The notes: a model not told the origin generated them from the sequence alone. A stretch of 64,000 nucleotides of DNA from Zygnema circumcarinatum SAG 698-1b (GCA_037447605.1 CM074814.1:310001-374000); one strand, 5' to 3'. Numbered from the stretch's first letter, positions 1-53,247 are shown. Numbers and translations are program-made.

Positions 1-49
1 GGTCAGAACACCTAGTGACTCAGCTGACTTTGCTGGCATTGCTGCGTGC

Positions 50-6184: not shown

Positions 6185-7642
6185 CGGGGGAAAGCGAGCG
6201 AGGAGTGGTCCCCTCTCGTTTGCAGATGCTTCGTACATAGGATACGATGTGTTTTTTAGACATTGTCTGGCTTGCTTGCTGTAGACGACAAGTGTAGTTT
6301 TTGAGGGCATGAGGGTGACGACATGAGATTGAGATTGAGAGAGAGAAGGGGGAGGGGGGGAGAGAAAGAGTGATCACTGAGAGTGTGTGTGTGTGGGGGG
6401 GGGGGGGGGGGNNNNNNNNNNGGGGGGGGGGGGGGGGGTGCTCCTCGCAACTGCACACGAATTTCAGGAATGGAATATACATCGCGTGTTCAGAAATCAG
6501 AGTGGATTTTCTTGAATTTTGAGTGAAGTGCTGCATCTTGAATTGGATGTGGATTTAGGAAGATGGTTTCAAGACTTGGCTTGGCACGCTTGCTATTGAA
6601 CACAAGTGTAATTTTGGAGAAAGAGAGAGAGAGAGAAAGCAAATCCGAGGAAAGGATTTTACGCAGGTCACATCATACATGTACCTTCACCAATGCCATA
6701 ATTTCATTCAATGTTGGTACAAAAAATAACAAATCAGCAATGCCCAATTGTCCCCCATTCAGCTTCTCTCCATACTCTTTAACTCTCCTCTGATAGACCA
6801 CTTTAGCGCATCCTCGATGACAAATTATACACTGCGCACCTTCCTGCCATTCTTCGGTGACTTTGTTGCTGAGACTCTCTCCCCAGCAAGAATCAACTCC
6901 TCAAATTTCACCCCTCTCTCAATAATAGCTTCCATTTTTTTTTTCCTCTCTTTTCCAGCCGCTCGATTTTTTCCTCTCTGTTTACCATATGATCAGACTT
7001 TGCCTTACAGCAAAGCCCTAAAGTCCTAACACTCAAAACCCACACACAACTATTTGACTCCTTTTAGTCGATCCTGAACGAGATCAGAGTCGTCGAACAC
7101 CACGCAATGGCACACTGCACACCGCCACCGACCACGTTCCATGTGTTAGACCATACAGTTCCATGCATGCATTACATTGATCCACAACGGGCCCCCATTC
7201 ACGTAGAATTCACGCTTGTTTGTGGAGCTGTTAAGCACATGAAACCACATATCTCTTATGCTTATGTTTATGTTTATGTTTAAGACAAGAGTAGCCATGA
7301 AGCAGCTGCTAATTGGGCCGGTAAATCGAACTGGAGAAATAAAGGAGAGGGATGGCTTCAAACGTACCACATGATGCAAAACCGGGTCGAATATACGGAA
7401 CGCGTCTCCTCTATGCATTACAATATGGCGAAACACAAAGACAAGGAACCCTCTCCCTCTCTCTCCCCCTCTTCCTCTCTCTCTGCCTCTCCTGTGAATG
7501 TACCTCTCCTCCTCTCCTACCCACGTGAAGGAAGCAACACTGTTCTTGACTCCGCAGCTATCGGGAAACTCTCATTTTGGTACACAACACTCCTTTCTAT
7601 TCGCTATTCGCGAAATCTCGGAATTCCCTTTGTTTTCAGCTC

Positions 7643-15792
<8,150 letters not shown>

Positions 15793-21996: not shown

Positions 21997-23894
21997 CTAA
22001 CGCTGCGGCAAAACCGACCTTGGCGTCCCTTCCTCTCCTGACACGCTGAGCTTCACCCTCTTAGAATGTTTTTCCACCTCCGCCATTAGACAGTTGGTAG
22101 TATTCTTCTCCATCTGTAACGAAGCCCGAGTGATCTCCAATTCCTCATGCATCCTCTTCACTGAGCCATGCAGGGATTCGATCGTCTTGGCCTGATCCTC
22201 TACCTTCTTCTTCTCCGCCATGAGAGCCTTTTCATGGAAGGCCAACATGGCTGAGATAAAACGCGGTTTTGCAGGAAGCCTCCCTCCCAGCAGAGCATGC
22301 TTCACCATCTCCTGCGAGAGCTTAAGACTCTCAAGATTCTCTCCTGCGAGGTGATCGCAGAGCTTCACACGATCATCTTCACTCACATCAGTGTTGTTCA
22401 CCAAAAACATGTCGATCGCTATGTACAAAATGTCGCAATTTTTTCGGGCATTCTTCGGCAGCACTTCACATAATGCATGAAGATTGGCAAGAGTCAACTT
22501 CTTGTCCTCCGCAGCTTTAAGAATGTAAGCATCCGCGAGCTTTCCAGCAGCTATTAAGTTTCCAGAAGCAGCAGTTCCATCGATTGGAAGTTCCTTTGCA
22601 TAGAGAGCGAAAATAGTGCATACGCTTTCTGGATGAAGCGATTTCACTTCCTCAAATCCGACTTGAGGAAGAACCTTTCCAATGCGGCGCTGAATATCAG
22701 AGGCCAATTTTGAGCCCAAGGCTTCGCTGTGCCTCATCAATGTGACGAGATATGAAGGGCTGGGAGGAATGGTAAGTTTCATCTGCTCCGATCTTCCATG
22801 CGCTGACTCACAAGGTTCACATTTAATGTTAGTTAGAGGCCAATCAAGCATTTTCACAAGGTATGTGAGAATTACTTGAAGTTTCATTGCTCCTTCGGTC
22901 GGCGACAACCCTGTGTCGGAAACCATTGTGGAACCATCCTCCTGTATCAAAGGTTCAAACATCCATTTCTTTCCTGCAGAAGCGAGAGAATTCCCTGTTC
23001 TGATAAATGTGACATTGTGTTCCTCAAAAACGGTCAAAAGAGCCTTCAATTGTTCCAATGGCAATGCCGCGACATGTCTGAAGAAGTTCCATGTCTCCGA
23101 AACTCGTTCTAAAGGATCAGGAAGGTGGTCAATGGATTCTGCATAGACTGCAAGTCCCTCACCAACTGTTCCAGTCAAGAAGTCAAGCAGTTAACCAGTC
23201 AGGCTAATCAGTCTAGTTATTTCGTCATGCAGTAAAAAGTAGTTTATTAGAATGTACCGTTCTATCAGTGAGCAGGTCTATATTGCCTGCTCTACTTTCA
23301 GTATAAGGAATCGGTTAACGTTAACAATATCCATAATTCGTACATTGTCACTTAACAATAACAATATAATATGACCTGCTTTTGGAGTTTCATAAAAAAG
23401 TCACCTGAGATGGTCGTTTGGCAGGCGGAGACGATGTCGCTCCCAAGAGTGTGCGCATATTTCCTCACAACCGCATCATTAAGAATCTCCAAGCAGGCTT
23501 TCCAATTCGTATAAACCTCCGCTTTCAAATACCCAACACAAGCGTTGATCAAATTATCCGGAGAAAAATCGTCGGTCATCTCTAAATGCAATGCACCCAA
23601 AAGAGTGTGAGTCACGGAGGTCTTCGGAATGGCTGACGAGACTCCGTAACAGTAGTCTGCAATGGCATGGAACGCCTGCAGCCCCCCGGGAAGCTCGTCG
23701 AGCTCGAGCACTGCCTCATCCTTAAGATGATGAAGCTTCTCCTTCAATTTGGGGCTCCGCGTGAAGAAGGGGAAGCGGTGCAAGCGCAGCTCTTTGCCGC
23801 CGATGCGAACGATTAAGTCGCTGAGTTCTCCGGATAGGCGGAAGGGTGCCCATGGTGACATGGGAAGGGTTAGCTTTGGGGCTATGGCCACCAT
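21997..23894 (-). CDS. Divergent BTB-NPH3 (NRL-like) protein, type A; exons 23894-23405 and 23147-21997; about 546 aa
   Basis: BTB start (SDLIVRIGGKELRLHRFPFFTRS...LPGGLQAFHAIADYCYG). NPH3-type C-terminal block (KLADAYI...LPKNAR..CDILY.AID.FL...DDRVKLC...KLSQE...HA...RLP), then a coiled coil. One phase-1 GT-AG intron. Confidence 0.85.
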
Positions 23895-25951: not shown

Positions 25952-27787
25952 TTAAGGGAGAACCGGATACACCACCGCAGGAATGACTGATTTGCGGACT
26001 CTGAAACCGGGGGTCACGCAGAAGGCGACATTCTCAATGTCACCATTGTCGGGCGAGACCGCGCATGGCACGAGCTCCATCAGAGCAGGGTCAAAGGCAG
26101 CTCCCCTTGCAACCCTAAAGATGGCGGCGGGGGGGTCAAAACTCTGAGCCAACTTGTGCAGTGACCACAACGCTTTACAGAGCGACCAAAGCTTGGCATT
26201 GCTGCGTCCTATGTCGAAAGAATTATCTTCCCAAGATACATTAGCCTGAGTAGCCCGGCACTTCTGATACCTTAGAAAGAGGCGAAGAGCGCAGAATTTC
26301 TTATACAAGAAGGACGATAATATGGCATCTCTCTCTTCAATTGCCCATTGCTCTTCCTTCTTCAGCTCGTTGAAATGCTGAAATGTTTTTTGGCTTCGTT
26401 TCACCTCATCGAGGCATGCTGAAAACCCGTCCGGAGAAAAAACCTCATTCTCAAAGGCTTCAAAGATTATGGCAGCGACTTGCGATTCCAGCACGCACTT
26501 GGTATGCGCAGGGCGACTGAACTTCACTCCTATTTGAAGCAGCTGCAAATTCCGCCACATCATGTTCTGATCACCTCCGCACATGCTTGTAAGCTTTTCT
26601 CGAATATCGGCACAAAAATATCGCAGAGCTTCCCTAACTTTCTCATTCGCTGCCTGAAGATCGTGCGGTTGCGCGAGAGAGCTATCATAGGACCCGCTGA
26701 TGGTGTCTTTGGACGAGACATATTGTTCGAGCATAGAGAGCTTTGAGAGGGTTTGATCCCTCTCCCGCTTTACTCTCTCTCCTTCCGCAAGCGATGCTGC
26801 ACTTTCCGCCTGAGTAGTTGTGAGCAGATTCTGAAGGTTCCGAACCTTCTCTTCAAAATTCCTGACCTCTCCTTTCGCCTTCAAAGTTATTCTCTCGTTT
26901 TGAAGCGCATAGTAGCGTGCTACAGCTTCCTTTTCTTTTTTGTACGCCGTTATCGCTGAAGCGTGAGATTCCTCTTGCTCTTTGATAACCGTTTGGGCAG
27001 CAATCAACTCTTTCTGGAGTTCAGCCACAGCTCTATTCCTGTCCTTCAGCTGTTCTTCCATACACAACAGATTTATCGTTTTCACTTCACTGTCTACGAT
27101 AATCTCGTTTCGAATCATCTCCATGTTCTTTGACACCTGCTTAAGCTCATCTGCGCCCAATTCGACTATTCGGCCCATTTCCTGGCTCTCCTGTCGCCAT
27201 CCATTTCTGTCCATTGTCAACTGTGAGGTTTCCTTTAAGAACACCTCCTCATTTGTAAGCAGAGCCTCCTCCAAATCCTTAACCCTCCTCTCTACCTCCG
27301 AACGGCTCAACTTTAATCGTTCATTCTCTAATTGCACTTGACGACATGCTGCAACTGCTTCCTGTTCTTCATCATCCCTCCATCGCTTTCCGGTTTCCAG
27401 ATTTCGAACGATTACAAAATCTGCCAAAGTATCACCACTCCCTCCTGCACCTTGTTTTGGTTTATCCAGATTCGCATACCCCTGCGACATCCCAACGTTC
27501 CCTCGCCCTCCAAAGAACTTCCCTAAGATGGCGTTCATACTGCTTATAGTTTCTTCTGCTGCATGCTTTTGTTTGTAAGCATGATCAAGAGTCTCCATTA
27601 ACATTGCACGAACTGCAACATGAACAGAAGAAGCATTATCCAAGCACGCGCCATCCGCAAAGTCAGAGAAAACGCACTGCAATCCTACGCTTTGTGAAGA
27701 GCTCCAGTCTCTTCTGAAAGGAAAAATCTGCACAGAAACATTTTGGAATCCGTGCTCCGAGCTTCCCCCGCTGCTCGACCGTGCCAT
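25952..27787 (-). CDS. Coiled-coil protein with GIL1/IRKI-type (GrpE-like) C-terminal domain, copy 1, 611 aa, intronless
   Basis: Long heptad region, then SYDSSLAQP.DL, FEAFENE, LWSLHKLAQSFDPPAAIFRVARGAAFDPALME...VAFCVTPGFRVRKSVIPAVVYP. Confidence 0.8.
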   Translation of the reverse strand: MARSSSGGSSEHGFQNVSVQIFPFRRDWSSSQSVGLQCVFSDFADGACLDNASSVHVAVRAMLMETLDHAYKQKHAAEETISSMNAILGKFFGGRGNVGMSQGYANLDKPKQGAGGSGDTLADFVIVRNLETGKRWRDDEEQEAVAACRQVQLENERLKLSRSEVERRVKDLEEALLTNEEVFLKETSQLTMDRNGWRQESQEMGRIVELGADELKQVSKNMEMIRNEIIVDSEVKTINLLCMEEQLKDRNRAVAELQKELIAAQTVIKEQEESHASAITAYKKEKEAVARYYALQNERITLKAKGEVRNFEEKVRNLQNLLTTTQAESAASLAEGERVKRERDQTLSKLSMLEQYVSSKDTISGSYDSSLAQPHDLQAANEKVREALRYFCADIREKLTSMCGGDQNMMWRNLQLLQIGVKFSRPAHTKCVLESQVAAIIFEAFENEVFSPDGFSACLDEVKRSQKTFQHFNELKKEEQWAIEERDAILSSFLYKKFCALRLFLRYQKCRATQANVSWEDNSFDIGRSNAKLWSLCKALWSLHKLAQSFDPPAAIFRVARGAAFDPALMELVPCAVSPDNGDIENVAFCVTPGFRVRKSVIPAVVYPVLP

Positions 27788-31140: not shown

Positions 31141-32808
31141 TCAAGTGGCCTCACCATTCGGTTGAGCGAGTGCAGGATACACATGGGAAGGAATGACTGA
31201 TTTTCGAACACGAAAGCCTGGCGATACAGAGAACGCTACTTGCTGCACTCCTCCAATTTCAGACGAGTCGATAGACGACACCAATTTCATAAAAGCAGGG
31301 TCAAATGGAGCTCCCCTTGGAACTCTGAAGATGGAGGCAGGAGGGTCAAAGCTCTGTCCCAGCTTGTGCATTGACCACACCGCTTTGCACAGGGCCATAA
31401 GCTTGGAATTGCTTCTGCTTACATTGAAATAATCTTCAACCCATGCTGGATCATGCCGATTGGCTCCCAGATCTCTCAGAAAGCAGAAAAGGGCCCACAA
31501 TTTGTCATTCACGAAGCTGTTGAAGCGCTCCTCTTTCTCTTCAATCGTCCATCGCTCTTTTTCCTTCAGCTCCTTAAAATGGTGAAAAGCTTCACTGCTT
31601 CGCTTCGTTGGGTCAAGCCAAACAGAAACTCCTGAGGGAGAAAAGCATTCGTTCTCAAAATTGGCAAACATCATGGATGAAATTTGTGCCTCCAACGCGC
31701 ATTTTGCATGTGCGGGCCTGCAAAATTGAACTCCCCACTGAAGCCTTGAAAGAACATGCCACAATTCTTTCTGATTTGCCACCAGCCGAGTGAATTTTAC
31801 TCGAAGTTCAGCACAGTAGCATGTAAGAGCTCTCGAAACTTCATTATTTGCTTCCTGAAGATCATGAGGCTGTGCGAGAGAGCTATCATACGAACCACTC
31901 ATGGTATCCTTTGAGGAGATGTCACGTTCAAGCATGGATAGTTTTGAGAGGGCTTGGTCCTTCTCGGCTTTGAATCTCCCTACGTCCTCACGGGAGGTTT
32001 TCAACTCCAATCGGATATTCCCGAGTTCCACCTCAAGATGACCGACAGTTTTTTGGTACTTCCTCACCATTTCTTTCTCCTTTGAGAGATCTTTTTTGTA
32101 CTGACCTTCTATGGCTTCTCGTTCTTTCTTATACTTTTCCATGGATAATCGATCTCGCTCTTCTTGCTCCTTGGGGATATTTTGCAATTGAATCATTATC
32201 ACACCTATTTTTTCATTCAAGTCCGTCAGCTGCTTCTTCATACATGCGCGATCAGAGTTTTCAGTCTTTTTCTCGAATCTCACTGCCTGCTCCATCCTTT
32301 CAAATTTCGACAGCAGCCCCTTGATCTCTTGCATACCCGTCTCAAATAGCTGGCCCATTCCGTCCCACTTGTCTCGACTTGAACGAAGTTCTTCAATAGC
32401 TGTCATCAGAGTCTCCAGACTCTGAACCTGAAACTGCGTTTGCGAATCTGGACGACTCCTTTCCAACAGCTCGTTCTGAGATGGAAATCCATGATGAGCT
32501 TCCTGTTCTTCCTTTCCCTTGCCCTTTTTCCCGCCTCTTGTAGCATTGATTCCTGTTAACCATGGGATGAATCTCATGACGCCGCCTCCCCCATCTCGAT
32601 CAGATTGATTTGGATTGACACCATCCAAACTCGGCCGGTCCAAACTGATTTGAACATGGCTTTGAGCATCAGATGACGAGACAGGGGTTTTTTTTCGCAC
32701 TCCCACATCTTGTGAACACGTCGATAACGCGCCTTTATTTGAAAGACCTTCTTCCGAGTTATTCTGCACTCTGCCCGCCACGCTTGGCTTGCTGCTTGTT
32801 TCCCCCAT
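31141..32808 (-). CDS. Coiled-coil + GIL1/IRKI-type (GrpE-like) C-terminal protein, copy 2, 555 aa
   Basis: Intact ORF ending IFRVPRGAPFDPAFM...VAFSVSPGFRVRKSVIPSHVYP. Confidence 0.82.
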   Translation of the reverse strand: MGETSSKPSVAGRVQNNSEEGLSNKGALSTCSQDVGVRKKTPVSSSDAQSHVQISLDRPSLDGVNPNQSDRDGGGGVMRFIPWLTGINATRGGKKGKGKEEQEAHHGFPSQNELLERSRPDSQTQFQVQSLETLMTAIEELRSSRDKWDGMGQLFETGMQEIKGLLSKFERMEQAVRFEKKTENSDRACMKKQLTDLNEKIGVIMIQLQNIPKEQEERDRLSMEKYKKEREAIEGQYKKDLSKEKEMVRKYQKTVGHLEVELGNIRLELKTSREDVGRFKAEKDQALSKLSMLERDISSKDTMSGSYDSSLAQPHDLQEANNEVSRALTCYCAELRVKFTRLVANQKELWHVLSRLQWGVQFCRPAHAKCALEAQISSMMFANFENECFSPSGVSVWLDPTKRSSEAFHHFKELKEKERWTIEEKEERFNSFVNDKLWALFCFLRDLGANRHDPAWVEDYFNVSRSNSKLMALCKAVWSMHKLGQSFDPPASIFRVPRGAPFDPAFMKLVSSIDSSEIGGVQQVAFSVSPGFRVRKSVIPSHVYPALAQPNGEAT

Positions 32809-35954: not shown

Positions 35955-37852
35955 ATGGCGGCCATAGCCCAAAAGCTAATCCTTCCCATGTCACCATGGG
36001 CACCCTTCCGCCTATCTGGAGAACTCAGAGACGTAATCGTTCGCATCGGCAGCAAAGAGCTGCGCTTGCACCGCTTCCCCTTCTTCACGCGGAGCCCCAA
36101 ATTGAAGGAGAAGCTTCATCATCTTAAGGATGAGGCAGTGCTCGAGCTCGACGAGCTTCCCGGGGGGCTGCAGGCGTTCCATGCCATTGCAGACTACTGT
36201 TACGGAGTCTCGTCAGCCATTCCGAAGACCTCCGTGACTCACACTCTTTTGGGTGCATTGCATTTAGAGATGACCGACGATTTTTCTCCGGATAATTTGA
36301 TCAACGCTTGTGTTGGGTATTTGAAAGCGGAGGTTTATACGAATTGGAAAGCCTGCTTGGAGATTCTTAATGATGCGGTTGTGAGGAAATATGCGCACAC
36401 TCTTGGGAGCGACATCGTCTCCGCCTGCCAAACGACCATCTCAGGTGACTTTTTTATGAAACTCCAAAAGCAGGTCATATTATATTGTTATTGTTAAGTG
36501 ACAATGTACGAATTATGGATATTGTTAACGTTAACCGATTCCTTATACTGAAAGTAGAGCAGGCAATATAGACCTGCTCACTGATAGAACGGTACATTCT
36601 AATAAACTACTTTTTACTGCATGACGAACTAACTAGACTGATTAGCCTGACTGGTTAACTGCTTGACTTCTTGACTGGAACAGTTGGTGAGGGACTTGCA
36701 GTCTATGCAGAATCCATTGACCACCTTCCTGATCCTTTAGAACGAGTTTCGGAGACATGGAACTTCTTCAGACATGTCGCGGCATTGCCATTGGAACAAT
36801 TGAAGGCTCGTTTGACCGTTTTTGAGGAACACAATGTCACATTTATCGCAACAGGGAACTCCCTTGCTTCTGCAGGAAAGAAATGGATGTTTGAACCTTT
36901 GATACACGAGGATGATTCCACAATGGTTTCCGACGCAGGGTTGTCTCCGACCGAAGGAGCAATGAAGCTTCAAGTAATTCTCACATACCTTGTGAAAATG
37001 CTTGATTGGCCTCTAACTAACGTTAAATGTGAACCTTGTGAGTCAGCGCATGGAAGATCGGAGCAGATGAAACTTACCATTCCTCCCAGCCCTTCATATC
37101 TCGTCACATTGATGAGGCACAGCGAAGCCTTGGGCTCAAAATTGGCCTCTGATATTCAGCGCCGCATTGGAAAGGTTCTTCCTCAAGTCGGATTTGAGGA
37201 AGTGAAATCACTTCATCCAGAAAGCGTATGCACTATTTTCGCTCTCTATGCAAAGGAACTTCCAATCAATGGAACTGCTGCTTCTGGAAACTTAATAGCT
37301 GCTGGAAAGCTCGCGGATGCTTACATTCTTAAAGCTGCGGAGAACAAGACGTTGACTCTTGCGAATCTTCACGCTCTATGTGGAGTGCTGCCAAAGAATG
37401 CCCGAAAGAATTGCGACATTTTGTACAAAGCGATCGACATATTTTTGGTGAACAACACTGATGTGAGTGAAGATGATCGTGTGAAGCTCTGCGATCACCT
37501 CGCAGGAGAGAATCTTGAGAGTCTTAAGCTCTCGCAGGAGATGGTGAAGCATGCTCTGCTGGGAGGGAGGCTTCCTGCAAAACCGCGTTTTATCTCAGCC
37601 ATGTTGGCCTTCCATGAAAAGGCTCTCATGGCGGAGAAGAAGAAGGTAGAGGATCAGGCCAAGACGATCGAATCCCTGCATGGCTCAGTGAAGAGGATGC
37701 ATGAGGAATTGGAGATCACTCGGGCTTCGTTACAGATGGAGAAGAATACTACCAACTGTCTAATGGCGGAGGTGGAAAAACATTCTAAGAGGGTGAAGTT
37801 CAGCGTGTCAGCAGAGGAAGGGACGCCAAGGTCGGTTTTGCCGCAGCGTTAG
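35955..37852 (+). CDS. Divergent BTB-NPH3 (NRL-like) protein, type A, near-identical inverted duplicate; exons 35955-36444 and 36702-37852; about 546 aa
   Basis: Same exon lengths (490 and 1151 nt) as 21997-23894, with only scattered substitutions. Confidence 0.85.
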
Positions 37853-40163: not shown

Positions 40164-42559
40164 TTAAGCGAGTGCAGGATACACATGGGAAGGAATGACT
40201 GATTCTCGAACACGGAAGCCTGGCGTCACAGAGAACGCTACTTGCTGCACTGTTACAATTTCAGACGAGTCGATAGACGACACCAATTTCATTAAAGCAG
40301 GGTCAAATGCAGCTCCCCTTGCAACTCTGAAGATAGAGGCAGGTGGGTTGAAGCCCTGCGCCAGTTTGTGCATTGACCACACCGCTTTACAGAGGGCCAT
40401 AAGCTTGGAATTCCTTCTTCTTACATTGAAATAATCTTCAAGCGATTCTGAATCAGGATAAAGGGTTACTTTATCTTTCAGAAAGTAGAAAATGGCCCTA
40501 AATTTGTCATCCACGAAGCTATTGAAGCGCTCCTCTTTCTCTTCAATCGTCCACCGCTCTTTTTCCTTCAGCTCCTTAAAATGCTGAAAAGCGTCACGGC
40601 GTCGCTTCGTTGGGTCAAGCCAAACAGAAAATTCTAAGGGAGAAAAGCATTCGTTCTCAAAATTGGCAAACATTATGGATGCAATGTATGCCTCCAACGC
40701 GTCTTTTGCATGTGCGAGCCTGCAGAATTTCACTCCCCACTGAACCCTTTCAAAAGGAAAAACCCACAATCTTGTCCGATTTTTCGCAAGAACTTTTCTT
40801 TGTAGAAGTTCAGCACAGTAGCATGTAAGAGCTCTCGACACTTCAATATTCGCTTCCTGAAGATCATGAGGCTCTGCGAGGGAGCAATCGAAATAGCTCC
40901 TTCCCTGTCGCCACTTCTCCACCTCCATCCTCAAAGACTCGACCTCCTTCGCCTGCTCCTCTCTCTTCGTCTTCTCCAACATAAAGGCCTCCCTCTGAAA
41001 CCTAAACATCGCCATAAAGAACTTCCCCTCCGTCGGAAATCGCCCCTCCTCCAATGCATGCAATATCATCTTTTCAGAGAGCTTGAGAATCTCAGGATTT
41101 TCTCCCACGAGGTTGTCACAAATCCTCACACGATCTTCTTGGCTCACTTTAGGGTTCTTCTTCAAAAACATGTCAATAGCCTTATACAAATCATCGCAAC
41201 ATAGTCGTGCAAACTTGGGTAAAGTTTCACACATTATGTGAAGATCATCCAGAGTGAAGCTCTCAACCTCTTGTACGGCCCAAAGAATATAAGAATCTTG
41301 CAGCTTTGCAACTGCGATCAAGTCCTCGGAAGCTTCAGATTCATCAGCTTGAATCTCATTCGAATAGAGAGTGAAGAGAGTGCACACATCTCCCTGATCT
41401 AACGATTTCAGGTCCTCAAAATTGATTTTAGGAAGCTCGTTTGAGAGACGGCGGTACAGCTCTAATGTCAATTTCGAGTCCTGGACTTGCTGGCTGTACC
41501 TCAATAAAGTTACAAGGTATGAAGGATTAGGGTGAAGATTAGGTCCACAACCTTCCTTTGCCACACTTGTGGGCGTACTGAGCATCTTCACAAGGTAACC
41601 CAAAAGTGCTTGAAGCTGCTTTCTCCCCTCGGCCGGAGAAATTTGCAAGTCTGAGAACATTGTGAGATCAGGATCGTCTACCGCCGGTGCAAACATCCAT
41701 TCTTTTCCCGTGGACGAGAGAGAGTTTCCCGTTTTGATGAAAGTGACTTCATGTTCCTCAAACGTACTCAAAAGTGCCTCTAAAGCCTCAAACGGTAGCG
41801 CCACAACCTTGTTTAAGAGGTTCCATGTCTTCAAAACTCGCTCCATTGGATCGTCGAGCTTGTCGATGGATGCCGCATATTCTGCAATTCAGCCTCGCGA
41901 ACATTCGGGTGAGACACAAGTGAATAAGAAATGAGATTATCGGCATAAGTCTACGGATTATGATCGTTAAGGTCAATTAGTGCTTAGAGATGGAAGCATG
42001 AGAAAAGACAATTAGTGCAGGAGATGCATGATAGTAGGTCAAAATTTTAATCAAGACTGCCAAAAAAAAAACAAAACTCACCTGAAATCGTCTTATTGCA
42101 GGCGGAAACGATCTCCTTCCCGAGGGAGTGCTTGTATTCCCTCACCACAGAATCTCTGAGAAGCACAAGGCAGGCCTCCCAGCCACTGTACACTTCTGCC
42201 TGCAGAAATGCAGTACACACGCTCACCAAATTCATTGGGGGAGAATATTCGTCCGTCATCTCCAACTGCAGAGCAGCCAATAGAGTGTGAGCAGCTGTGG
42301 TCGCTGTGAAACTTGGGGTGATTCCGTAACAGTAATCGGCGACGGCATGGAACGCCTCCGAACCGCCCGGATGGTGCTCCAGCTGCAGCTCCGCCATGGC
42401 TACCGCATTCTGAAAATGAAGTTTTTCCTTCAATGTTTTGCTCTTTAAGAACAAGGGGAAGCGATGAAGCAGAAAGCATTGGCTTTCGACGAGAACGCGC
42501 ACGTCGTGAAGTTCTGCTGATTGGCGGAAATGGGTCCATGGCGATGCAGGAGAGGCCAT
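40164..42559 (-). CDS. In-frame fusion of BTB-NPH3 (type B) with the GIL1/IRKI-type (GrpE-like) C-terminal domain; exons 42559-42082 and 41881-40164; about 731 aa
   Basis: Exon 1 is the BTB domain. Exon 2 runs without a stop from the NPH3 block (KLQDSYI...LPKFAR..CDDLYKAIDMFL) through ...EVEKWRQG into RSYFDCSLAEPHDLQEAN...FDPALM...VTPGFRVRESVIPSHVYPALA. Confidence 0.85.
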
Positions 42560-44324: not shown

Positions 44325-46112
44325 ATGGCAGCGACGAGCAGCAAGCAAAGCGTGGCGTGCAGAGGGCAGAATAACTCGAAAAAAGGTCTTTCATATAAAT
44401 GCGCGTTAACGAAGTGTCCACAAGATGCGCGAGTGCGAAAAAAAAATTGTGTCTCGTCATCTGATGCTCAAAGCCATGATGAGATCAGCACTGCGTTTTG
44501 TGAAATGCTGATGGGGAAGTCGTCCAATCTGATGATACTAGCTCAAGATTGGATGCAGGAATTTCAAACCGATCTGTATGAATTCTTTCCAAGTCGAGGA
44601 AGTTTTGACAGGCCGCGTTTGGATGGTGTTAATCCAAATCAATCTGATCAAGATGGGGGAGGTGGCGCCATGAGATTCTTGGCTTCTCTTCCTGGAGCGT
44701 TGATTCGAGGAATCAACGGTACAGGAGGCGGCATAAGGTGCAAGGGAAAGGACGAACAGGAAGCAGATCATGTATTTCCATTTCAGAATGAGCTGTTGGA
44801 AAGGAGTCGTCCTGACTCGCAAACGCAGTTTCAGGATCAGAGTCTGAAGGATACTCTGATTACAGCTATTGAAGAGTTTCGTTCAAGCCGAGACACGTGG
44901 GAGGAAAGGGGCCGGCTAGTTGAGACGGGTATGGAGGCGATCAAGGGGCTGCTGTCGAAATTTGAAAGGATGGAGCAGGCAGTGAGATTCGAGAAAGAGT
45001 CTGAGAACTCTGATCGCGCATGTTTGGAGAGGCAGCTGACGGACTTGAATGAAAAACTAGCGTTGATGAACGGGGAAAATATTCAATTGCAAAAGTTTGC
45101 CAAGGAGCAAGAAGAGCGAGATCGGTTATCGATAGAAAAGTATAAGAAAGAACGAGAAGATTTAGAAGGTCAGTACAAAAAGGTTCTCTCCAAAGAGCAA
45201 GAAATGGTGAGGACGTACGAAAAATCTGTCGGTCATCTTCAGGTGGAACTCGGGAATATCAGATTTGAGTTGAAAACCTCTCGAGAGGACGTAGTGAGAT
45301 TCAAAGCCGAGAAGGACCAAGCCCTCTCAAAACTATCCATGCTTGAACGTGACATTTCCTCTAAGGATACCAGTAGTGGTTCGTATGATAGCTCTCGCGC
45401 ACAGCCTCATGATCTTCAGGAAGCAAATAATGAAGTTTCGAGAGCTCTTACATGCTACTGTGCTGAACTTCGAGAAAAACTTACTCTGCTGGTGGCAAAT
45501 CAGAAAGAATTTTGGCAGCGTCTATCAACGCTTAAGCTGGGAGTGAAATTTTGCAGGCCTGCACATGCAAAATGCGCGTTGGAGGCACACATTGCATCCA
45601 TAATGTTCGCCAATTTTGAGAACGAATGCTTTTCTTCCTCAGGAGTTTCTGTTTGGCTTGACCCAACGAAGCGAAGCAGTGATGCTTTTCAGCATTTTAA
45701 GGAGCTGAAGGAAAAAGAGCGATGGATGATTGAAGAGAAAGTGGAGCACTTCAATAGCTTCGTGAATGACAGATTGTGGGCCATTTTCTGCTTCCTGAGT
45801 GGTCTGGGAGCCAATTGGCATGATCTAGCATGGGTTGAAGATTATTTCAATGTAAGAAGATGCAATTCCAAGCTTATGGCCTTGTTTAAAGCGCTGTGGT
45901 CAATGCACAAGCTGGCGCAGAGCTTCGACCCTCCCGCCTCCATCTTTAGAGTTCCAAAGGGAGTTGCATTTGACCCTGCTTTAATGCAATTGGTGTCGTC
46001 TATTGACTCGTCTGAAATTGGAGCAGTGCAGCAAGTAGCGTTCTGTGTATCTCCAGGCTTCCGTGTTCGAAATTCAGTCATTCCTTCCCATGTGTATCCT
46101 GCACTCGCTTAA
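44325..46112 (+). CDS. Coiled-coil + GIL1/IRKI-type (GrpE-like) C-terminal protein, copy 3, about 595 aa (inverted paralogue of copy 2)
   Basis: The ATG at 44325 is equivalent to the copy 2 start. Intact ORF with an extra N-terminal insert of about 40 aa. Confidence 0.82.
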   Translation: MAATSSKQSVACRGQNNSKKGLSYKCALTKCPQDARVRKKNCVSSSDAQSHDEISTAFCEMLMGKSSNLMILAQDWMQEFQTDLYEFFPSRGSFDRPRLDGVNPNQSDQDGGGGAMRFLASLPGALIRGINGTGGGIRCKGKDEQEADHVFPFQNELLERSRPDSQTQFQDQSLKDTLITAIEEFRSSRDTWEERGRLVETGMEAIKGLLSKFERMEQAVRFEKESENSDRACLERQLTDLNEKLALMNGENIQLQKFAKEQEERDRLSIEKYKKEREDLEGQYKKVLSKEQEMVRTYEKSVGHLQVELGNIRFELKTSREDVVRFKAEKDQALSKLSMLERDISSKDTSSGSYDSSRAQPHDLQEANNEVSRALTCYCAELREKLTLLVANQKEFWQRLSTLKLGVKFCRPAHAKCALEAHIASIMFANFENECFSSSGVSVWLDPTKRSSDAFQHFKELKEKERWMIEEKVEHFNSFVNDRLWAIFCFLSGLGANWHDLAWVEDYFNVRRCNSKLMALFKALWSMHKLAQSFDPPASIFRVPKGVAFDPALMQLVSSIDSSEIGAVQQVAFCVSPGFRVRNSVIPSHVYPALA

Positions 46113-47351: not shown

Positions 47352-49486
47352 TTAAAACTCAAATTTCATCGTTTTCTGAAACTTGCATATTCCATTTTTC
47401 TTCGCTCTACCTATCACTTCGATCACGCTCCTTCCAAAGAACATTTCCACTTCGATTTCTCGGTTATCCAAAATATTGTAGTTCTTTGGTAGCTGCAGAA
47501 CGAATTTGCCCTCCTCTTGTACACCTTCATCAGTGACGTACTTCGGGGAACTTTCGGTTGTACTATACAAAACAATTTCTGAATGTCCTTGATTAGCAAG
47601 TTCTGGCACAAACAAAACATGCTTGAAACTTTCGTCTTCTTTTACTTTCTGATGAACTTCCACGAAACGTACGAAAATATCGTCGCACACAGGCAGAAAA
47701 AATGGCGGAAAAGGACGGGGTATGATGCTGAGCTTATCCTCCGGATCGGAGGGCTGAAATATCCTTGAAGCGCTAATTCCGTACGTCTTCTGGAGGCACC
47801 TTGAACCTGGTCGCAATTCAGGTCTAAGTGCATATAACGCGGCACCGACACAGACTGCACCGCCGGGATTGGGCGGCCGCAGGACTTTAAGCTCCTGAAA
47901 CAGTTCCTTCATGCGGTTAAAAAGATATTCTGACGAGGAAAAGCCGCCGACTGCAACAACGTGTTGCACTTTCGGGGCAGCTTCAAGCTGATGGGCAATA
48001 AGGTTCAAAATTTTCTCCACCACGGGATCGAAAAACCCTCTCACTTCATCAGGCGAAATTTTAATCTCATCGAAACTGCATGGAGGATTCTCGTTCTTAA
48101 AGTCGTAGTGGGTCCAATCATCGGCAAGTTCAGATGGTATTGAAATCAGACAGACTTCCCTTGAAGACGTGCTGTTGTATACATCAAAAACTGGAAGTCA
48201 GGAAATTTTTGATAGATCTCACTTATCATCATTTAGCTATGGCATCTTGACTATTGGCAGTGCCCCAAATCAATCGCCGACACAACTGAGTAGACTGTAA
48301 GAAAAGAGAAATAACCAACTAATTTCAATGTCAATTAAATTACAGCAGAAAAAGCGCCACTCGGATGCAAACGTTATCTCTCTTCTTAAAGGAAAGAACG
48401 TGCTTACTCGAAATTGCATTTATAATCCTCCCACTGTCGTAAAAGCGCAATCTCTGTAGTTGGATACGATTCAATAAACTTTGTCCAGCAGCCAATCTTT
48501 GACTTCACATGTTCCAAGAAATTGCTGTCAACATCAATACTCCCACACAACTCCCCAATGCTTCTTATCACCTCCCTCGTCCTCCCTCCCTCCTGCAACT
48601 CCTGCACAACGATATCAACTGTACCCCCCCCCGCATCAACCACTAGGAACTGGTCGCCCTCAGAAAGATGGAAATCTTTGTCTTCTTGGCAGTATATGGA
48701 GGCAGCTTCAGGCTCAAGTACAATATGGAGTGGAAAAGGACTTCCCCTTCCTGAGTTGCAGCCTTCCTCCTGAACAAGTCCAGCATCGTTTACGATTTTT
48801 CTCATTCTCTGCTTCGCTTTATCGTCCCACATTGCTGGAACTGTCACGGCCCACTCAATATCTGAATTTGTAATGTGTTTGCCATATTGTTGCTTCACGT
48901 CTTTGAGGACAAATTCTCCAAGAAACTTCAAGTAGTCTGATATCGCTTTATCTACCGAAAGCCCATCAGGAAGGTCCGGAATCTTCGACTTGTCGCTCTC
49001 CCGCGGTGCCAAATGCAGCTTGAAAAGCTTCACGAGGTATAACTTTCCAGCTGTAGAATTTTCCAATTTCTCACTTTCATACGGACTTTCTACAGAACCT
49101 TTCTTCTTCTTGACCCGCTCAACCGCCGCAAAATAGCGAAGAACTGCAGGCCACCCCCAGTCCCTTGCCACGTACTCTCCTGTCTCACTTTTTTCGTATA
49201 GAATCACCGTTGCCGTTTTACAATACGGCTTTTTCAGAAATTCACCTTGTCCTAGCCAATCTTCAAACATCCACCATTTTTCAGGCTGGCTTTTTGATAT
49301 ATAGGTGAACCCTGAGAAGGTCGTCCCGAAATCGAGACCAACAACAACGCGGGATTCGTTGAACGAGGAAACTTCTGCTGATGTCGAACCCCTTTCACTC
49401 TCTCCCCCTGCTCCTCTATTGCCTCCCGGTTTTCCTCCAACTTTGCCCTTACCCTTCCCCTTCCCTTTAAGTTTATATTTCCCCAT
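47352..49486 (-). CDS. Atypical Hsp70 (HSPA12-type), copy 2; exons 49486-48408 and 48171-47352; about 632 aa
   Basis: GLDFGTTFSGF, AVTVPAMW, LEPEAAS, VVDAGGGTVD and VGGFS motifs. Phase-2 intron in the same position as in copy 1; exon 2 starts align (GPNYNNECRIEIP vs DTSSREVCLISIP). Confidence 0.88.
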
Positions 49487-49672
49487 CTCCCCCTTCCTTT
49501 TGGTCTAAGAAAAAGTGACTCCCTCCTTTCCTCTTGCGTTCTCCCCCTCTCTGTGCTTCTCTCACACCTTTGCACTCTGCCTCTCTCACTCCCTCCCACT
49601 CCCCCGGAAGCTACTATGACCCGGAATGAAGGCTGGCTCGCCTCCTCTGCAGTGAGAACAAGGTGAATGGTG

Positions 49673-50031
49673 ATTGGTCGATTTCATCTTTGCTTAAAAA
49701 ATGCGAAGGCATCGGCGGCAGTTCAGGGCTGCATGCACATACGCAAGCAACAGAAATTTCACGAACTTGAGGTTCCTGCAGCCGCCGATGGCCTTTTGCT
49801 CGTGCGAAGCAAACAGCGGCCAATGGGAGCCGCATGATGAGAATTGGCGGAGAAGTGGCGGAGATTTTACGCCTTTTCGTTTGGAGGACAACTCTATAGG
49901 TAACCAGGAGCTATATTTTTCTGTTAAGGAAAGGTGACGTGATGAAGCGGAAAGCAGCCAATAGGAAACCCATGCAGAGAAGAGCATGCATGCGCCGCCG
50001 TAGTAATGGCGGACTCCAACTGAGCCATTGG
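49673..50031. promoter_or_regulatory. Putative bidirectional promoter between the Hsp70 and GrpE-like copy 4
   Basis: CCAAT/ATTGG at 49673, 49820, 49958 and 50027; TGACGTGA at about 49935. About 850 bp between the opposed ATGs. Confidence 0.5.
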
Positions 50032-50339
50032 CGGGGAAAGCCATCTAGGACTACATGACCTCCTCTTTCATCGCTTTTTTATATTCTACGCTTTAAAGAA
50101 GGCTTTCCTTGTGAAGGGCTTTTCTTGGAAGGTTCTCCTCCTGCTCAGTGGGAAGCAAGTTTACGATTTTTTTTTTTTTGAAACAGCCTATCATCCTTCG
50201 CCTGCTTTCCTTTCTAAGGTTCTTGAATGGTTGGCCTATTCTTGGAAAGCTCCTGCACTACCTCGCTTGCAGGAACAGATCATTCCTCTTTCTCTTAGTC
50301 ATTTTTTTAGCAGAAAGCGAGAAAAGGATTATCGACGCC

Positions 50340-51770
50340 ATGGCAAAAACAATTTTCAGCAAAATTTTCCTTCCTTTTTCTCCTCCAAAGACAGAAAAAT
50401 CTTCCCAAAACAACGACCAGCCGCAGCAGAGTTCCACCAAAGCGCAGGATTTTTGTCACAGTGAGGGTTCACCTTCAACCGTGAATCCAACCGAGGGTTC
50501 ATCTGCAAATGAGCAGCAGAACCAAGCTCCCAGTTGCGAGGAATCCATGGACAGAAAATCGCCGGAGATTCAAGATTTAAAACAAAAGGGATGTGGAATG
50601 GGTGTAATATGTGGAAAGAGTTTGGTGGATGGTTTCCAAAGAAGAGGAAAAATCAAGGCAGGAAGTAAAAGAGAGAAAGAGATTGCTGCTGCAAATGACA
50701 GAATTCGGATAGAGAATGAAAACTTGACTTGCTCACAGCTACAGAAGCAGGTTGAGGAACAGGAGGAGATGCTGCTGAAACTCGGAAATCACATGAAGGA
50801 GAAAGAAACAAGAGTTCAGATTCTCCGTAAAGAGAAACGTGATCTCAAACGAGAGCAGGAAGAAGCGAGAAAGAAAATCAAGAGGATTTTGGAGTTGAAG
50901 GGAAGTGAAACAGAGGAAGACAAGGCAGACTTGTGTGCAGAAGTAGAAAAGTTAAAAAGTGAGAGAGACTTTGCCCTTTCAAAACTCACCGTACTTGAAA
51001 ACGATGTCGCTTCCAGGGACACTCTTAGTGGTTCTTATGACATCCTTCTCGCACATCCCGAAGACCTCCACGTGGCGATGGCAAAAATCGACACATTTCT
51101 GAAGTCTTTTAGTTTAGAGTTGCGAGAGAAGCTCATATTAAATTTCAAAGGAGATTTGTGGCAGCTCCTTGAAAGGCTTGCAAAGGGAGCAGAGTTTGTT
51201 CGTCCTGCACACGCCAATTATGCGCTGCATGCAGCAATTTCTGCAGTAATGTTTGCGAATTTTGAAAACGAATGTTTTCTTCCTGCGGGGCCGACATTAT
51301 ACGTTGATGCGAAGGAGCGCAGCAGTGAAAGTTTCAGGATCTTCACGGAGCTTAAGACAGAAGAAGGATGGAACGATGCAAAGACAAAGGTTCAATTTTT
51401 TGAGTTTCTTGAAAGCAAACGCAGTGGTTTGATTCAAGTATTGACGAGTGCAAACGGTTTAGGGCTTCAGGCTAGCCCAGAAGAAGTTGTGGGAGAATTC
51501 GGAGTTCAGAGAGAGAATCTCAAACTAGTGTCTCTTTGTAAGGCAGTATGGTCACTTCACAAGTTGGCGATGAGCTTCAATCCACCTGCTTCCATATTTA
51601 GGGTTTCTAGAGGAGTTGAATTTGATCCTGCACAGATGAGTTGGGTTCCTGTCATCGACTCATGCGAAAATGAAACTCTAAAGAGAGTGGCCTTCTGCGT
51701 CAATCCGGGATTTCGTGTCAGGAAATCGGTGATTCCAGCTTCAGTATATCCGGAGATTGCTAAGATTTGA
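50340..51770 (+). CDS. Coiled-coil + GIL1/IRKI-type (GrpE-like) C-terminal protein, copy 4, about 476 aa from the first in-frame ATG
   Basis: SGSYDILLAHPEDL, FANFENECF, VWSLHKLAMSFNPPASIFRVSRGVEFDPAQM...VAFCVNPGFRVRKSVIPASVYP. Confidence 0.8.
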   Translation: MAKTIFSKIFLPFSPPKTEKSSQNNDQPQQSSTKAQDFCHSEGSPSTVNPTEGSSANEQQNQAPSCEESMDRKSPEIQDLKQKGCGMGVICGKSLVDGFQRRGKIKAGSKREKEIAAANDRIRIENENLTCSQLQKQVEEQEEMLLKLGNHMKEKETRVQILRKEKRDLKREQEEARKKIKRILELKGSETEEDKADLCAEVEKLKSERDFALSKLTVLENDVASRDTLSGSYDILLAHPEDLHVAMAKIDTFLKSFSLELREKLILNFKGDLWQLLERLAKGAEFVRPAHANYALHAAISAVMFANFENECFLPAGPTLYVDAKERSSESFRIFTELKTEEGWNDAKTKVQFFEFLESKRSGLIQVLTSANGLGLQASPEEVVGEFGVQRENLKLVSLCKAVWSLHKLAMSFNPPASIFRVSRGVEFDPAQMSWVPVIDSCENETLKRVAFCVNPGFRVRKSVIPASVYPEIAKI

Positions 51771-53247
51771 AGCTGGTAGAGGCATCTCTTGCAGAGGGTC
51801 AAAACTGTGGGCTCTGAGGGTCATTCAACAGAGTAGGCATCACTTTTTGTGCGGACTGAGAAAGAGACTGAGGAATTTGTGCTTTTGGTTTTGACCCAGG
51901 AAGGACTAATCGATCTTCCAAACTACTTTTGAAAACTGAAAGGACAGAGAAGACGAGCAACATAGCGTCCTATGCTGTTGCCCATAATTCCTTTGAGTGA
52001 AGCCTTTTCTTTCTGCTTTTGCGTGTTGTCTGCTGCATTTGTGCTTTTGCCAATGATGACCACCTGGCTGTTTGTGAAAGACTTTTTCCTTTATACATGT
52101 CACAGTAGCTGCGAGCGTTCAGCTCCAAGGTAAGGATAGTTACGCAACCAATGTTCTTTCTACGGGTAATCAAAATTCTGGATTGCAGTATGAGTGAATT
52201 TATCTGAGACAACCCCAACAAGACTTCGCCTGCTTCGTCTTCTTCGCATAAATGCATGAAGTTAATCCTCTCTATTGTTCCAATCGCGACGAGTCACGTG
52301 GACACTGATGCGTATGTGGCGAGTCGCCATTGGCTGATTGCTCGAGTCTTGTTCGCAAGTTTGAGGAAGCCCCCCACCCCCCCGCTTCCCCCCCCCCCTT
52401 CTCCACCCACCCCATTTTTCCCCTTCTCTCCCCCACCTCTCCTCCCCAACCTCTTCCCCACCCCCCCCCTCTCTCTCCCCGGCCACTCTTCCTCCCTCCC
52501 TCTCCCCCCTCCCTCTCTCCTCGCCCTCTCCTCCCCCCTCCTCTCCACCCCCCCCGCCCCCTCTCTCCCCGCCCCCTCTTCCCCCCCCCNNNNNNNNNNT
52601 CTCTCTCCACTCCTCTTCCCCCCCCCCCTCTCTCCCCCCACCTGGAAAGAGAGAGATTTTGGCCACCTTCTTTTTTCTTGAGGGACTTGGAAGGCGCGCA
52701 GCGGTTCGGACATGGCATGACAAATGGCGGAGGGCATGTGAGGGCGGATGGGACCCTTCCCTCTTGAAGGGAACTTCCCTCCATTTGGTCCTTCGCTTTC
52801 CTCTCTCCATTCGTGCTTGCACTCTCCCCCGCCTCCACTTCAAGACCTTTCCATGGTCAAACTTGCCTCATTGCTGGAAGGATGAATCTCCAAGGTTGGA
52901 AACCGAGTCAAAAAAAATTGCTTTTTCCTTTTTCATTTTAAGCCTCCCAAACAAAGTTCTTCAATTTTCAAATCTTTAACGGTCAAATAGCGTACAAGGA
53001 ACCATTCTGGCCATAACAAATTCTACATCCTTTTGGTAATAATTTTGTTTTTTTTTAATTTTCAGCCAAAAGGAAAGCTCATCAGCATCCCTGGTGCAAA
53101 CATGCAAGCATGGTGCAGCCCAAGGGCTGCTAGAAAGGCCGTTCCATGTGTAGCAAGCAGGGGACGATACTGACGGACATAGACTAGACGTTGGCGCCGT
53201 TACAGTTCAGTTATGCTGGATCTGAGTGTTCGATGGAGCCTTCCTCG

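Follow-up and report, generated by a model that had tools for sequence, protein, structure and literature searches.

Two genes lie head-to-head within a 64-kb window, the whole stretch of Zygnema circumcarinatum SAG 698-1b DNA (64,000 nucleotides) analyzed here, one of them resembling Hsp70 and the other labeled GrpE-like in the initial annotation, and this arrangement raises the question of whether they constitute an old functional pair or are neighbors for other reasons. Both genes were confirmed at the locations first given for them and in the claimed divergent orientation, with start codons at 49486 on the minus strand and 50340 on the plus strand; the distance between the ATGs, estimated initially at about 850 bp, was measured as 853 bp. 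The spacer between the start codons (49487–50339), a candidate bidirectional promoter, contained neither an Rfam family nor a long ORF with a family match. Four runs, all belonging to one study, contain this stretch, and their contigs run uninterrupted through both the intron of the minus-strand gene and the spacer. Neither joints nor transcript ends were seen in these contigs over the stretch, and, being jointless across intron and spacer, they thus behave as DNA.

The minus-strand gene, modeled from ORFs, tblastn of homologues and splice-site enumeration, has two exons encoding an atypical (HSPA12-like) Hsp70 ATPase of 632 aa. Exon 1 (48408–49486, minus strand), supported by its ORF, by Pfam HSP70 and by the point at which tblastn of homologues stops (48407), opens with an N-terminus rich in Lys and Gly. 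It contains phosphate-1 (VVGLDFGTTFSG), LEPEAAS and phosphate-2 (DAGGGTVD) motifs and scores above threshold against Pfam HSP70 (PF00012; 26.5 bits, cut-off 20.6). The inferred intron (48172–48407, minus strand; 236 nt, GTAAGC...ACAG, phase 2) was placed by splice-site enumeration and homologue alignment: the GT..AG pair was chosen that retains the strong donor GTAAGC together with an open frame, and in the homologue alignment residue 334 continues to 336, which fits the intron model. The Hsp70-like paralogue at 4244–6184 has an intron at the matching position with an identical donor, GTAAGCAC. Exon 2 (47352–48171, minus strand, including the stop codon), identified by tblastn of homologues over residues 336–600, bears the adenosine-binding motif VGGFSSSEYL and the C-terminal part of the protein, with weak matches to the BcrAD_BadFG and HscA actin-fold profiles.

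Database searches, which took these exons one by one (the joined protein was used in local tblastn against the window and fetched loci only), retrieved 467 homologues, the best being 43% identical, to bryophyte, lycophyte and Klebsormidium proteins; the nearest relatives were streptophyte, chytrid and other protist proteins. The phosphate-1 DxGTT, EPxAA, phosphate-2 DxGGGT and adenosine GG signatures were invariant across 58 homologues and are visible in the window translation. When compared with solved structures, the family profile matched the ATPase domains of DnaK, BiP and Hsc70 (E 1e-13 to 9e-17), the best being that of DnaK (1dkg_D, E 9e-17), and with its motifs intact and this domain as its closest match, the ATPase looks functional as judged from sequence. 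The matches cover the ATPase domain only (approximately residues 114–404 of DnaK), and no canonical substrate-binding domain was detected in the protein. The NCBIfam DnaK models reached 29–35 bits against cut-offs of 648–822. On these two observations the protein does not qualify as a canonical DnaK/Hsc70-type chaperone.

On the opposite strand, a single exon (50340–51770, plus strand) identified from its ORF and Pfam PF24994 encodes a 476-aa member of the GIL1/IRKI family, in which a disordered N-terminus precedes a coiled coil and the C-terminal region is conserved. PF24994 scored 31.8 bits (cut-off 27) over residues 419–470 (51594–51749), spanning its full profile (1–53), and it matched 45 of the 45 aligned relatives. 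An exhaustive profile search recovered 322 relatives in total, including Selaginella 'GRAVITROPIC IN THE LIGHT 1' and Ceratopteris DUF641 proteins. The DUF641 N-terminal domain (PF04859) had no match at E ≤ 0.1 in any window copy and was found in some relatives of the plus-strand protein (e.g., P0222). A word-index search with the whole protein returned no match because coiled-coil words swamp the query; with the C-terminal region only, one match was obtained, a Macadamia IRK-interacting protein. Sequence searches of solved structures with GIL1 profiles produced coiled-coil noise only, a Rosetta-stone search for Hsp70–GIL1 fusions detected no Hsp70 domain in the ten longest GIL1-family matches, and no paper in the library searched connects the GIL1/IRKI family with Hsp70 or GrpE.

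The label GrpE-like is defensible by fold but not by family. The GrpE profile PF01025 gave no match at E ≤ 0.1 on the plus-strand protein, reached 14.7 bits on the paralogue at 44325 (cut-off 25.8), and produced weak matches (E ≤ 0.1) in three of 45 family members, located in the C-terminal beta domain, the best of them at E 0.0032; it stayed below threshold in every protein tested, and the plus-strand protein is therefore not a PF01025 member. By hhalign, residues 217–266 of the piece used, in its own numbering, were aligned with residues 144–192 of E. coli GrpE (probability 5.9%, P 0.0065), with the aligned stretch FDP...V...PGF/KGY...I..A.V falling on the C-terminal beta domain, and a genome scan with E. 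coli GrpE retrieved relatives of at least 86% identity only. By sequence family, the profile and hhalign results place the protein outside GrpE, and PF24994, the GIL1/IRKI domain, fits instead.

At the level of structure, the region of residues ~231–474 (51030–51761, plus strand) is predicted by AlphaFold to form a helical bundle with a small C-terminal beta domain, the model of the C-terminal 270 aa having a pLDDT of 89.9. In a comparison with 48,161 chains, GrpE occupied ranks 1, 2 and 4 (Z 5.4, 5.1 and 5.0), and in a second look at the Foldseek top 1000 the best five structures were all GrpE (Z 5.0–5.7, with 1dkg, 4ani and 9bls among the nearest), separated by a gap of 1.1 Z from the next structure at 3.9. 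The Klebsormidium partner, 21–22% identical to the window protein and modeled independently (pLDDT 90.0), had all four GrpE representatives at ranks 1–4 among the same 48,161 chains (Z 6.3–6.7), in an alignment covering nearly the whole GrpE chain, with an rmsd of 15–18 Å and with single-helix matches close behind (Z 5.4–5.8). The GrpE scores of 5.0–6.7 all lie in the range (Z < 8) in which, according to the caution given by the structure search, a match can reflect a common arrangement. Foldseek against the PDB gave no significant match. An initial reading in which the plus-strand gene was not GrpE at all was revised after the fold searches, and for the predicted models the term GrpE-like is defensible at the fold level, with homology to GrpE as a putative explanation.

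A second likeness emerged from the same protein. Among ESM Atlas models, its best non-plant structural neighbor was the MIEAP domain (PF16026, the C-terminal region of mitochondria-eating protein/SPATA18), with a TM of 0.65 across 226 residues and an rmsd of 3.8; language-model features likewise put MIEAP nearest among named families (0.80, only a lead by the calibration of the tool). Neither the window protein nor any of the 45 relatives had a PF16026 sequence match (E ≤ 0.1).

The initial annotation had proposed that the pair may be old, and the divergent pair was indeed recovered in the moss Ceratodon purpureus and in the alga Klebsormidium nitens. In C. purpureus (L001), P0001, the closest homologue of the Hsp70-like protein, is head-to-head with a GIL1_IRKI_C gene (1134 bp between the ATGs) and is flanked on its other side by a second Hsp70-like gene; in K. 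nitens (L002), P0053, the only Hsp70-like gene among the matches listed, is head-to-head with a 594-aa GIL1-like ORF accompanied by a second copy. Across these three lineages the head-to-head spacers range from 0.85 to 2.9 kb. In the liverwort Calypogeia fissa, GIL1-like P0121 and an Hsp70-like gene are linked in tandem at a distance of 5.6 kb. Counting against the pairing, no GIL1-like gene was found within 10 kb at five of the eight streptophyte Hsp70-like loci examined (those of Diphasiastrum, Sphagnum, Physcomitrium and two metagenomic moss-like contigs). The second Hsp70-like gene of the window has no GIL1-like neighbor either, for one Calypogeia GIL1-like gene no Hsp70-like neighbor was found, and in a fungal check the Hsp70-like loci of Geranomyces and Rhizophagus had neither a GIL1-like nor a MIEAP-like neighbor.

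The trees of both families agree with a pairing that is ancestral. Klebsormidium forms the basal branch of the Hsp70-like tree, followed by the two window copies and then by land plants, among which the paired or linked genes form one clade and the unpaired moss expansions another. In the GIL1 tree, the paired copy is basal within a clade of the five window copies (support 100/100) and is 42–50% identical to the others, against 85% for the youngest window pair, in agreement with its earlier description as a diverged, older copy. The deep branches of this tree lack resolution, so the paired copies are only candidate orthologues. Beyond these five GIL1-like and two Hsp70-like genes, the window contains NPH3-family genes (21997–23178 and 36671–37852), an in-frame NPH3/GIL1-head fusion (40167–41846), and retrotransposon genes near the pair; Ceratodon has at least 14 Hsp70-like clusters.

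The reading that we favor, tentatively and with rather less than even confidence, is that of an old, functionally linked streptophyte pair, with the GIL1-like protein serving as a GrpE-type cofactor. The two products, an HSPA12-like ATPase and a GIL1/IRKI coiled-coil protein, would work together: the latter, probably dimerized through its coiled coil, would bind the ATPase domain of its neighbor by way of the GrpE-like head, in the role of a nucleotide-exchange-type cofactor or adaptor. Through the 853-bp spacer both genes would be switched on together, possibly under stress, given that it has one perfect heat-shock element.

This last step brings the spacer itself into focus, which had been described as a compact, CCAAT-rich shared promoter with four CCAAT boxes in both orientations. 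In the animal literature, bidirectional promoters commonly have CCAAT/NF-Y sites. The motif scan located a cluster of five boxes (49673–50031), two on the plus strand (49820 and 49958) and three on the minus strand (49673, 49843 and 50027), several of which lie within a repeated ATTGGCGG(A/G)G motif; both orientations were thereby upheld and the number was corrected. Five or more CCAAT per 854 bp occur in 8.3% of sliding windows, and the count is thus unremarkable; five within 360 bp is the maximum of the whole window (0.22% of positions), for a span picked after seeing the data. The cluster is not conserved in the Ceratodon spacer (one CCAAT in 1134 bp) or in the Klebsormidium spacer (background density), and what is left of the described promoter is a weak local enrichment. 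The further motif reported between the two ATGs was found as a single copy of TGACGTGA (49935–49942, plus strand), an ACGT-core motif of the CRE/bZIP type. The scan also identified a perfect trimeric heat-shock element, GAAatTTCacGAA (49753–49765, plus strand), located 267 bp upstream of the Hsp70-like ATG and enclosed by a 10-nt perfect inverted repeat (49710–49719/49781–49790). As two such elements were observed in the 64 kb against 1.29 expected, the one in the spacer is a lead and not a proof. Heat-shock elements were not conserved in the moss spacer, in the alga spacer or upstream of the unpaired paralogues, and no motif common to the window, Ceratodon and Klebsormidium spacers was found.

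These spacer results bear directly on the possibility, which we consider somewhat unlikely, that the genes are co-regulated neighbors and nothing else, sharing bidirectional control (by stress or light, for example) while their proteins do not touch and the GrpE likeness reflects architectural convergence. Such an account would suit the retention of the head-to-head arrangement at short range in three lineages, the modest structural Z scores and weak sequence support for GrpE homology, and the finding that the nearest non-plant relatives by shape and language-model features are MIEAP proteins, which are not known Hsp70 cofactors; it sits poorly with three spacers that have no motif in common and with the top placement of GrpE representatives for two divergent models, which would be hard to obtain from generic architecture, and the presence of an Hsp70-superfamily partner every time would be a striking coincidence if the fold were meaningless. 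Distinctly unlikely, in our estimate, is a functional module in which the GIL1-like protein is a scaffold or adaptor and not an exchange factor, delivering the ATPase either to clients or to signaling complexes of the BTB-NPH3/CUL3 type, as in responses to light and gravity, with the GrpE-like head serving as a docking piece only. A scaffold role suits the long coiled coil and the disordered N-terminus, relatives of the plus-strand gene are named after gravitropism in the light, and NPH3-family genes and the NPH3/GIL1-head fusion occur in the same window; yet fusion and clustering are all that speaks here for NPH3 contacts, the fusion involves a copy other than the paired one at 50340, and the points in its favor are compatible with exchange activity as well. 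Chance adjacency without a functional link, with both multi-copy families accumulating in accessory regions prone to duplication and rich in transposons, is more unlikely still, for although the copy numbers, the nearby retrotransposon genes and the unpaired state of most examined Hsp70-like loci would be expected from it, the immediate head-to-head arrangement recurs in three lineages from Klebsormidium to mosses with linkage again in a liverwort, the only listed Hsp70-like gene of Klebsormidium is paired, and the paired genes are early-branching in both trees.

The interpretation first given to this locus is, overall, partly supported, and the old streptophyte pair with a GrpE-type cofactor is the reading whose consequences we follow here. 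For the plant GIL1/IRKI family, which is poorly understood, the pairing suggests a role that can be tested, that of an Hsp70 partner. To our knowledge, GIL1/IRKI/DUF641 proteins are named from plant phenotypes and interaction partners and have no established biochemical mechanism, and we know of no dedicated cofactors for HSPA12-type Hsp70s; the pair and the GrpE-like fold merge both problems into the question of whether the head binds the ATPase and alters its nucleotide cycle. A broader proposal, unlikely as we see it, is that GIL1/IRKI (DUF641), perhaps with the MIEAP-domain proteins found in animals and fungi, represents a cytosolic GrpE-like branch for HSPA12-type Hsp70s of which the pair is a surviving trace. 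If true, a previously unrecognized branch of GrpE-like cofactors would be dedicated to atypical HSPA12-type ATPases, the pair in the window, Klebsormidium and moss would be the relic of an ancient two-component chaperone or signaling module, and some light might fall on the animal MIEAP domain. Eukaryotic GrpE-type exchange factors are, as far as we know, found only in mitochondria and plastids, so that the view of Hsp70 regulation would change if a branch existed outside these organelles.

Several known systems can be set beside this locus. Like eukaryotic bidirectional promoters, which have spacers below 1 kb and are often rich in CCAAT/NF-Y sites, the window has an 853-bp spacer with CCAAT boxes in both orientations; the enrichment here, on the other side, is weak, picked post hoc and not conserved in moss or alga. 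With HSPA12A/B-type Hsp70s the minus-strand gene shares Hsp70 ATPase motifs with large insertions, the lack of a detected canonical substrate-binding domain, a total length of about 600 aa and, at the family level, expansion in some lineages; HSPA12-like is a type name that we take to be appropriate and does not denote membership in the animal HSPA12 clade. The plus-strand protein resembles the land-plant GIL1/IRKI (DUF641) family in its C-terminal domain, which exceeds the Pfam gathering threshold, and Atlas models of DUF641 clusters superpose on it (TM 0.73–0.76); it differs from that family (PF24994, PF04859) in having no detected DUF641 and in its identity of 21–29% to named members. Its likeness to MIEAP is one of structure and embedding, without a Pfam-level sequence match. 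In bivalves, Hsp70 and Mieap orthogroups are co-expanded (PMC8382680), which parallels the linkage of Hsp70-like and GIL1-like genes in the window.

A further comparison is with bacterial grpE–dnaK, in which GrpE is the nucleotide exchange factor of DnaK (e.g., PDB 1DKG). Unlike that system, the window is a eukaryotic nuclear locus with divergent and not co-directional genes and putatively separate transcripts; unlike GrpE, the plus-strand protein falls outside PF01025 and has a much larger helical part; and unlike DnaK, the ATPase is HSPA12-like, with an exchange activity of its partner that is putative. In both systems, the gene next to that of an Hsp70-superfamily ATPase encodes a protein that combines, by prediction in the case of the window, a long helix and a helical bundle with a small C-terminal beta domain. 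Among solved structures, GrpE comes nearest to the window protein and to its Klebsormidium relative, and the DnaK ATPase domain is the one that the Hsp70-like family matches best.

The window, part of a green-lineage genome, carries an Hsp70-like gene on the minus strand and a GIL1-like gene on the plus strand that point away from each other, with 853 bp separating the two ATGs, in agreement with the head-to-head pair about 850 bp apart described in the initial annotation; we confirm this pair as genuine, and it is both old and conserved. The first ORF of the Hsp70-like gene runs from its ATG at 49486 to 48404, and homology goes on in a different frame within a second ORF (48171-47352, minus strand). 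Moss, lycophyte, and Klebsormidium homologues align to 49357-48407 and resume at about 48167 with almost no residue lost. By enumerating every frame-open GT/GC..AG combination, we obtained a best splice model in which the donor GTAAGC follows position 48408 and the acceptor ACAG precedes 48171, giving an intron of 236 nt and a product of 632 aa; the two exons were queried separately in database searches, and the joined protein was used only in local comparisons. The first ORF exceeded the threshold of the Pfam HSP70 model (26.5 against 20.6 bits), and the motifs that mark an Hsp70-fold ATPase were present and invariant across 58 homologues. Among solved structures, the family profile matched best to 1dkg_D, the ATPase domain of DnaK (E 9e-17). 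Since the match is confined to the ATPase domain and DnaK equivalog scores fall far short of their cut-offs, we class the gene as an atypical, HSPA12-like Hsp70 and not as a canonical one. A second HSPA12-like gene lies on the plus strand at 4244-6184 (also delimited as 4238-6172). In the tree it is sister to the paired gene, to which it shows 46% identity overall and 56% over exon 1. The intron position and the donor GTAAGCAC are common to both genes. No GIL1-like gene adjoins this paralogue, and upstream of it we observed an ORF for a reverse transcriptase of the copia type (50-1630).

The plus-strand gene (50340-51770) is a single exon encoding 476 aa, in which a low-complexity N-terminus gives way to a coiled coil and then to a C-terminal region that is conserved. 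This last region scored above the threshold of the Pfam GIL1_IRKI_C model (31.8 against 27 bits), and no DUF641 N-terminal domain was detected in the protein, which is thus assigned by profile to the GIL1/IRKI family. The "GrpE-like" label of the initial annotation is defensible by fold, as GrpE proteins are the top structural neighbours, but the family is GIL1/IRKI and the Pfam GrpE model (PF01025) stayed under threshold on the GIL1-like proteins. Weak matches of that model fell on the C-terminal beta domain of the paralogue at 44325 and of three of 45 relatives (best E 0.0032), and an hhalign comparison with the GrpE sequence of E. coli returned a probability of 5.9%, aligning the C-terminal beta-domain stretch to GrpE residues 144-192. 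By sequence, then, the partner falls outside the GrpE family, and Foldseek found no significant match to its model in the PDB. We compared the confident model of its last 270 residues (pLDDT 89.9, pTM 0.85) with solved structures, using 48,161 representative chains and no prefilter, and E. coli GrpE, Geobacillus GrpE, and human GrpEL1 took ranks 1, 2, and 4, the best GrpE neighbour reaching Z 5.4 with an rmsd of 3.9 Å over 100 aligned residues. A second look at the best 1000 chains of Foldseek placed GrpE entries in the top five positions (Z 5.0-5.7), the next chain having 3.9. With the model of the Klebsormidium partner (21-22% identity, pLDDT 90.0), all four GrpE representatives occupied ranks 1-4 (Z 6.3-6.7) in alignments that take in nearly the entire GrpE chain with its long helix, at an rmsd of 15-18 Å; single-helix matches came next (Z 5.4-5.8). 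The sequence and structural signals, several and independent, agree in making homology between the partner and GrpE likely, and we grade it no higher because the Z values lie under the caution line of the tool (Z 8), below which a common arrangement can produce such scores.

The evidence is best accounted for by an old module of two genes, probably one in which an atypical Hsp70 ATPase works with a coiled-coil GIL1-like partner. The GrpE-like head of the partner would dock onto the Hsp70-like ATPase domain and, once docked, the partner might serve either as a cofactor of the nucleotide-exchange type or as an adaptor. The divergent arrangement would permit joint control of both genes; the steps from fold to binding and from binding to activity are ones that we infer.

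Mere co-regulation of the two genes is the first alternative. It is the geometry alone that makes a shared promoter plausible. The spacer holds five CCAAT boxes, not the four initially counted, in both orientations as had been described (two on the plus and three on the minus strand), together with a single TGACGTGA at 49935, which had likewise been noticed between the ATGs. Of all sliding windows of 854 bp, 8.3% contain at least five CCAAT boxes; the five of the spacer fit in 359 bp, a span picked post hoc for which this is the maximum of the 64-kb window (0.22% of positions), and several of them are included in a repeated motif, ATTGGCGG(A/G)G. One perfect trimeric heat-shock element (49753-49765) precedes the ATG of the Hsp70-like gene by 267 bp; the whole window contains only two such elements, against 1.29 expected. 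The proposed CCAAT-rich shared promoter is putative: its boxes form a weak local enrichment, and neither that cluster nor the repeated motif nor TGACGTGA nor the heat-shock element is kept in the equivalent spacers of Ceratodon (moss) or Klebsormidium (alga). Rfam returned no family in the region of the pair. In all sequencing runs found with the stretch, contigs pass through both intron and spacer with no joint, which is how DNA behaves.

Several further features were observed in and around the pair. The heat-shock element is centred in a perfect 10-nt inverted repeat (CATCGGCGGC / GCCGCCGATG, 61 nt apart, 49710-49790), within which a second, imperfect repeat pair is nested. In two of the runs (X1 and X3), depth is about 2-4 times that of the surroundings at 49436-49597 and 50376-50479, where the two coding regions have their 5' ends. 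Contigs there pass out of the window sequence into unrelated letters at 49597 and come into it from unrelated letters at 50376; this anomaly could represent a repeat or a second locus sharing the two 5' ends but having a different spacer. Another small CCAAT cluster with an ACGTG core (CCAATCGCGACGAGTCACGTGGAC ... GCCATTGGCTGATTG, 52256-52345) directly precedes a low-complexity ORF rich in proline and an assembly gap of 10 N (52590-52599).

A second alternative gives the partner an adaptor role linked to the NPH3 genes of the window and to an NPH3-GIL1 fusion. Two stand-alone NPH3 ORFs are present (21997-23178 and 36671-37852), and the fusion ORF (40167-41846, minus strand) joins an NPH3 domain (residues 14-246) to GIL1_IRKI_C (residues 505-556); the GIL1-like family therefore clusters with NPH3 genes and has been fused to one once. 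No Hsp70-GIL1 fusion was present among the ten longest members of the family. The fusion is one of five GIL1-like copies in the window (25955-27787, 31144-32808, 40167-41846, 44325-46109, and 50340-51770), which form a single clade (100/100). The paired copy is the first branch and the youngest two copies are 85% identical, so the paired copy is the old one, as had been supposed. Separately, an exhaustive search yielded P0202, a GIL1_IRKI_C relative of 981 aa with an SMC_N/AAA_23 ATPase head as its N-terminus, in which the domain is attached to a coiled-coil ATPase of another kind.

The pairing was further examined by inspecting the genomic surroundings of homologues for GIL1-like genes within 10 kb of Hsp70-like genes. 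In the moss Ceratodon purpureus (CM026424.1), the closest homologue of the window gene (P0001, 10001-11815, plus strand) stands head-to-head with a GIL1_IRKI_C gene (7103-8866, minus strand), the ATGs being 1134 bp apart. Another Hsp70-like gene lies beyond this neighbour; the two Hsp70-like genes are sisters in the tree (100/100) and flank the GIL1-like gene on both sides (3701-11815 of the locus), which suggests that the Hsp70 gene was duplicated locally, on either side of its partner. The alga Klebsormidium nitens shows the same head-to-head order, with P0053 starting at 7695 (plus strand), a GIL1-like ORF of 594 aa at 3021-4805 (minus strand), and a further GIL1-like copy at 48-1616 (plus strand). 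In the liverwort Calypogeia fissa the genes are linked on the same strand, the best-matching GIL1-like gene (P0121) being 5.6 kb upstream of an Hsp70-like gene; a further GIL1-like gene of Calypogeia is not next to any Hsp70-like gene. The 10-kb surroundings of the Hsp70-like genes examined contained no GIL1-like gene in Diphasiastrum, Sphagnum, Physcomitrium, two moss-like metagenome contigs, or two fungi. The Hsp70-like tree places Klebsormidium basally, followed by the two window copies and then by land plants, in which the paired or linked genes are grouped in one clade and a large unpaired moss expansion in the other. This topology is consistent with a pairing that was ancestral and was lost in subsequent duplicates, and partner orthology stays putative because the deep branches of the GIL1 tree lack resolution. 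Chance adjacency within a duplication-prone region is the weakest alternative; we judge the immediate head-to-head arrangement in three such distant lineages difficult to attribute to chance.

In the literature searched, no paper tied DUF641/GIL1 or MIEAP to GrpE or HSPA12. Among known systems, the nearest non-plant relatives of the GIL1-like protein by shape are MIEAP-domain proteins (TM 0.65 over 226 residues), which are also the nearest by language-model features (0.80, to be read as a lead only), and in bivalves a published comparison reports that the Hsp70 and Mieap orthogroups are both expanded (PMC8382680).
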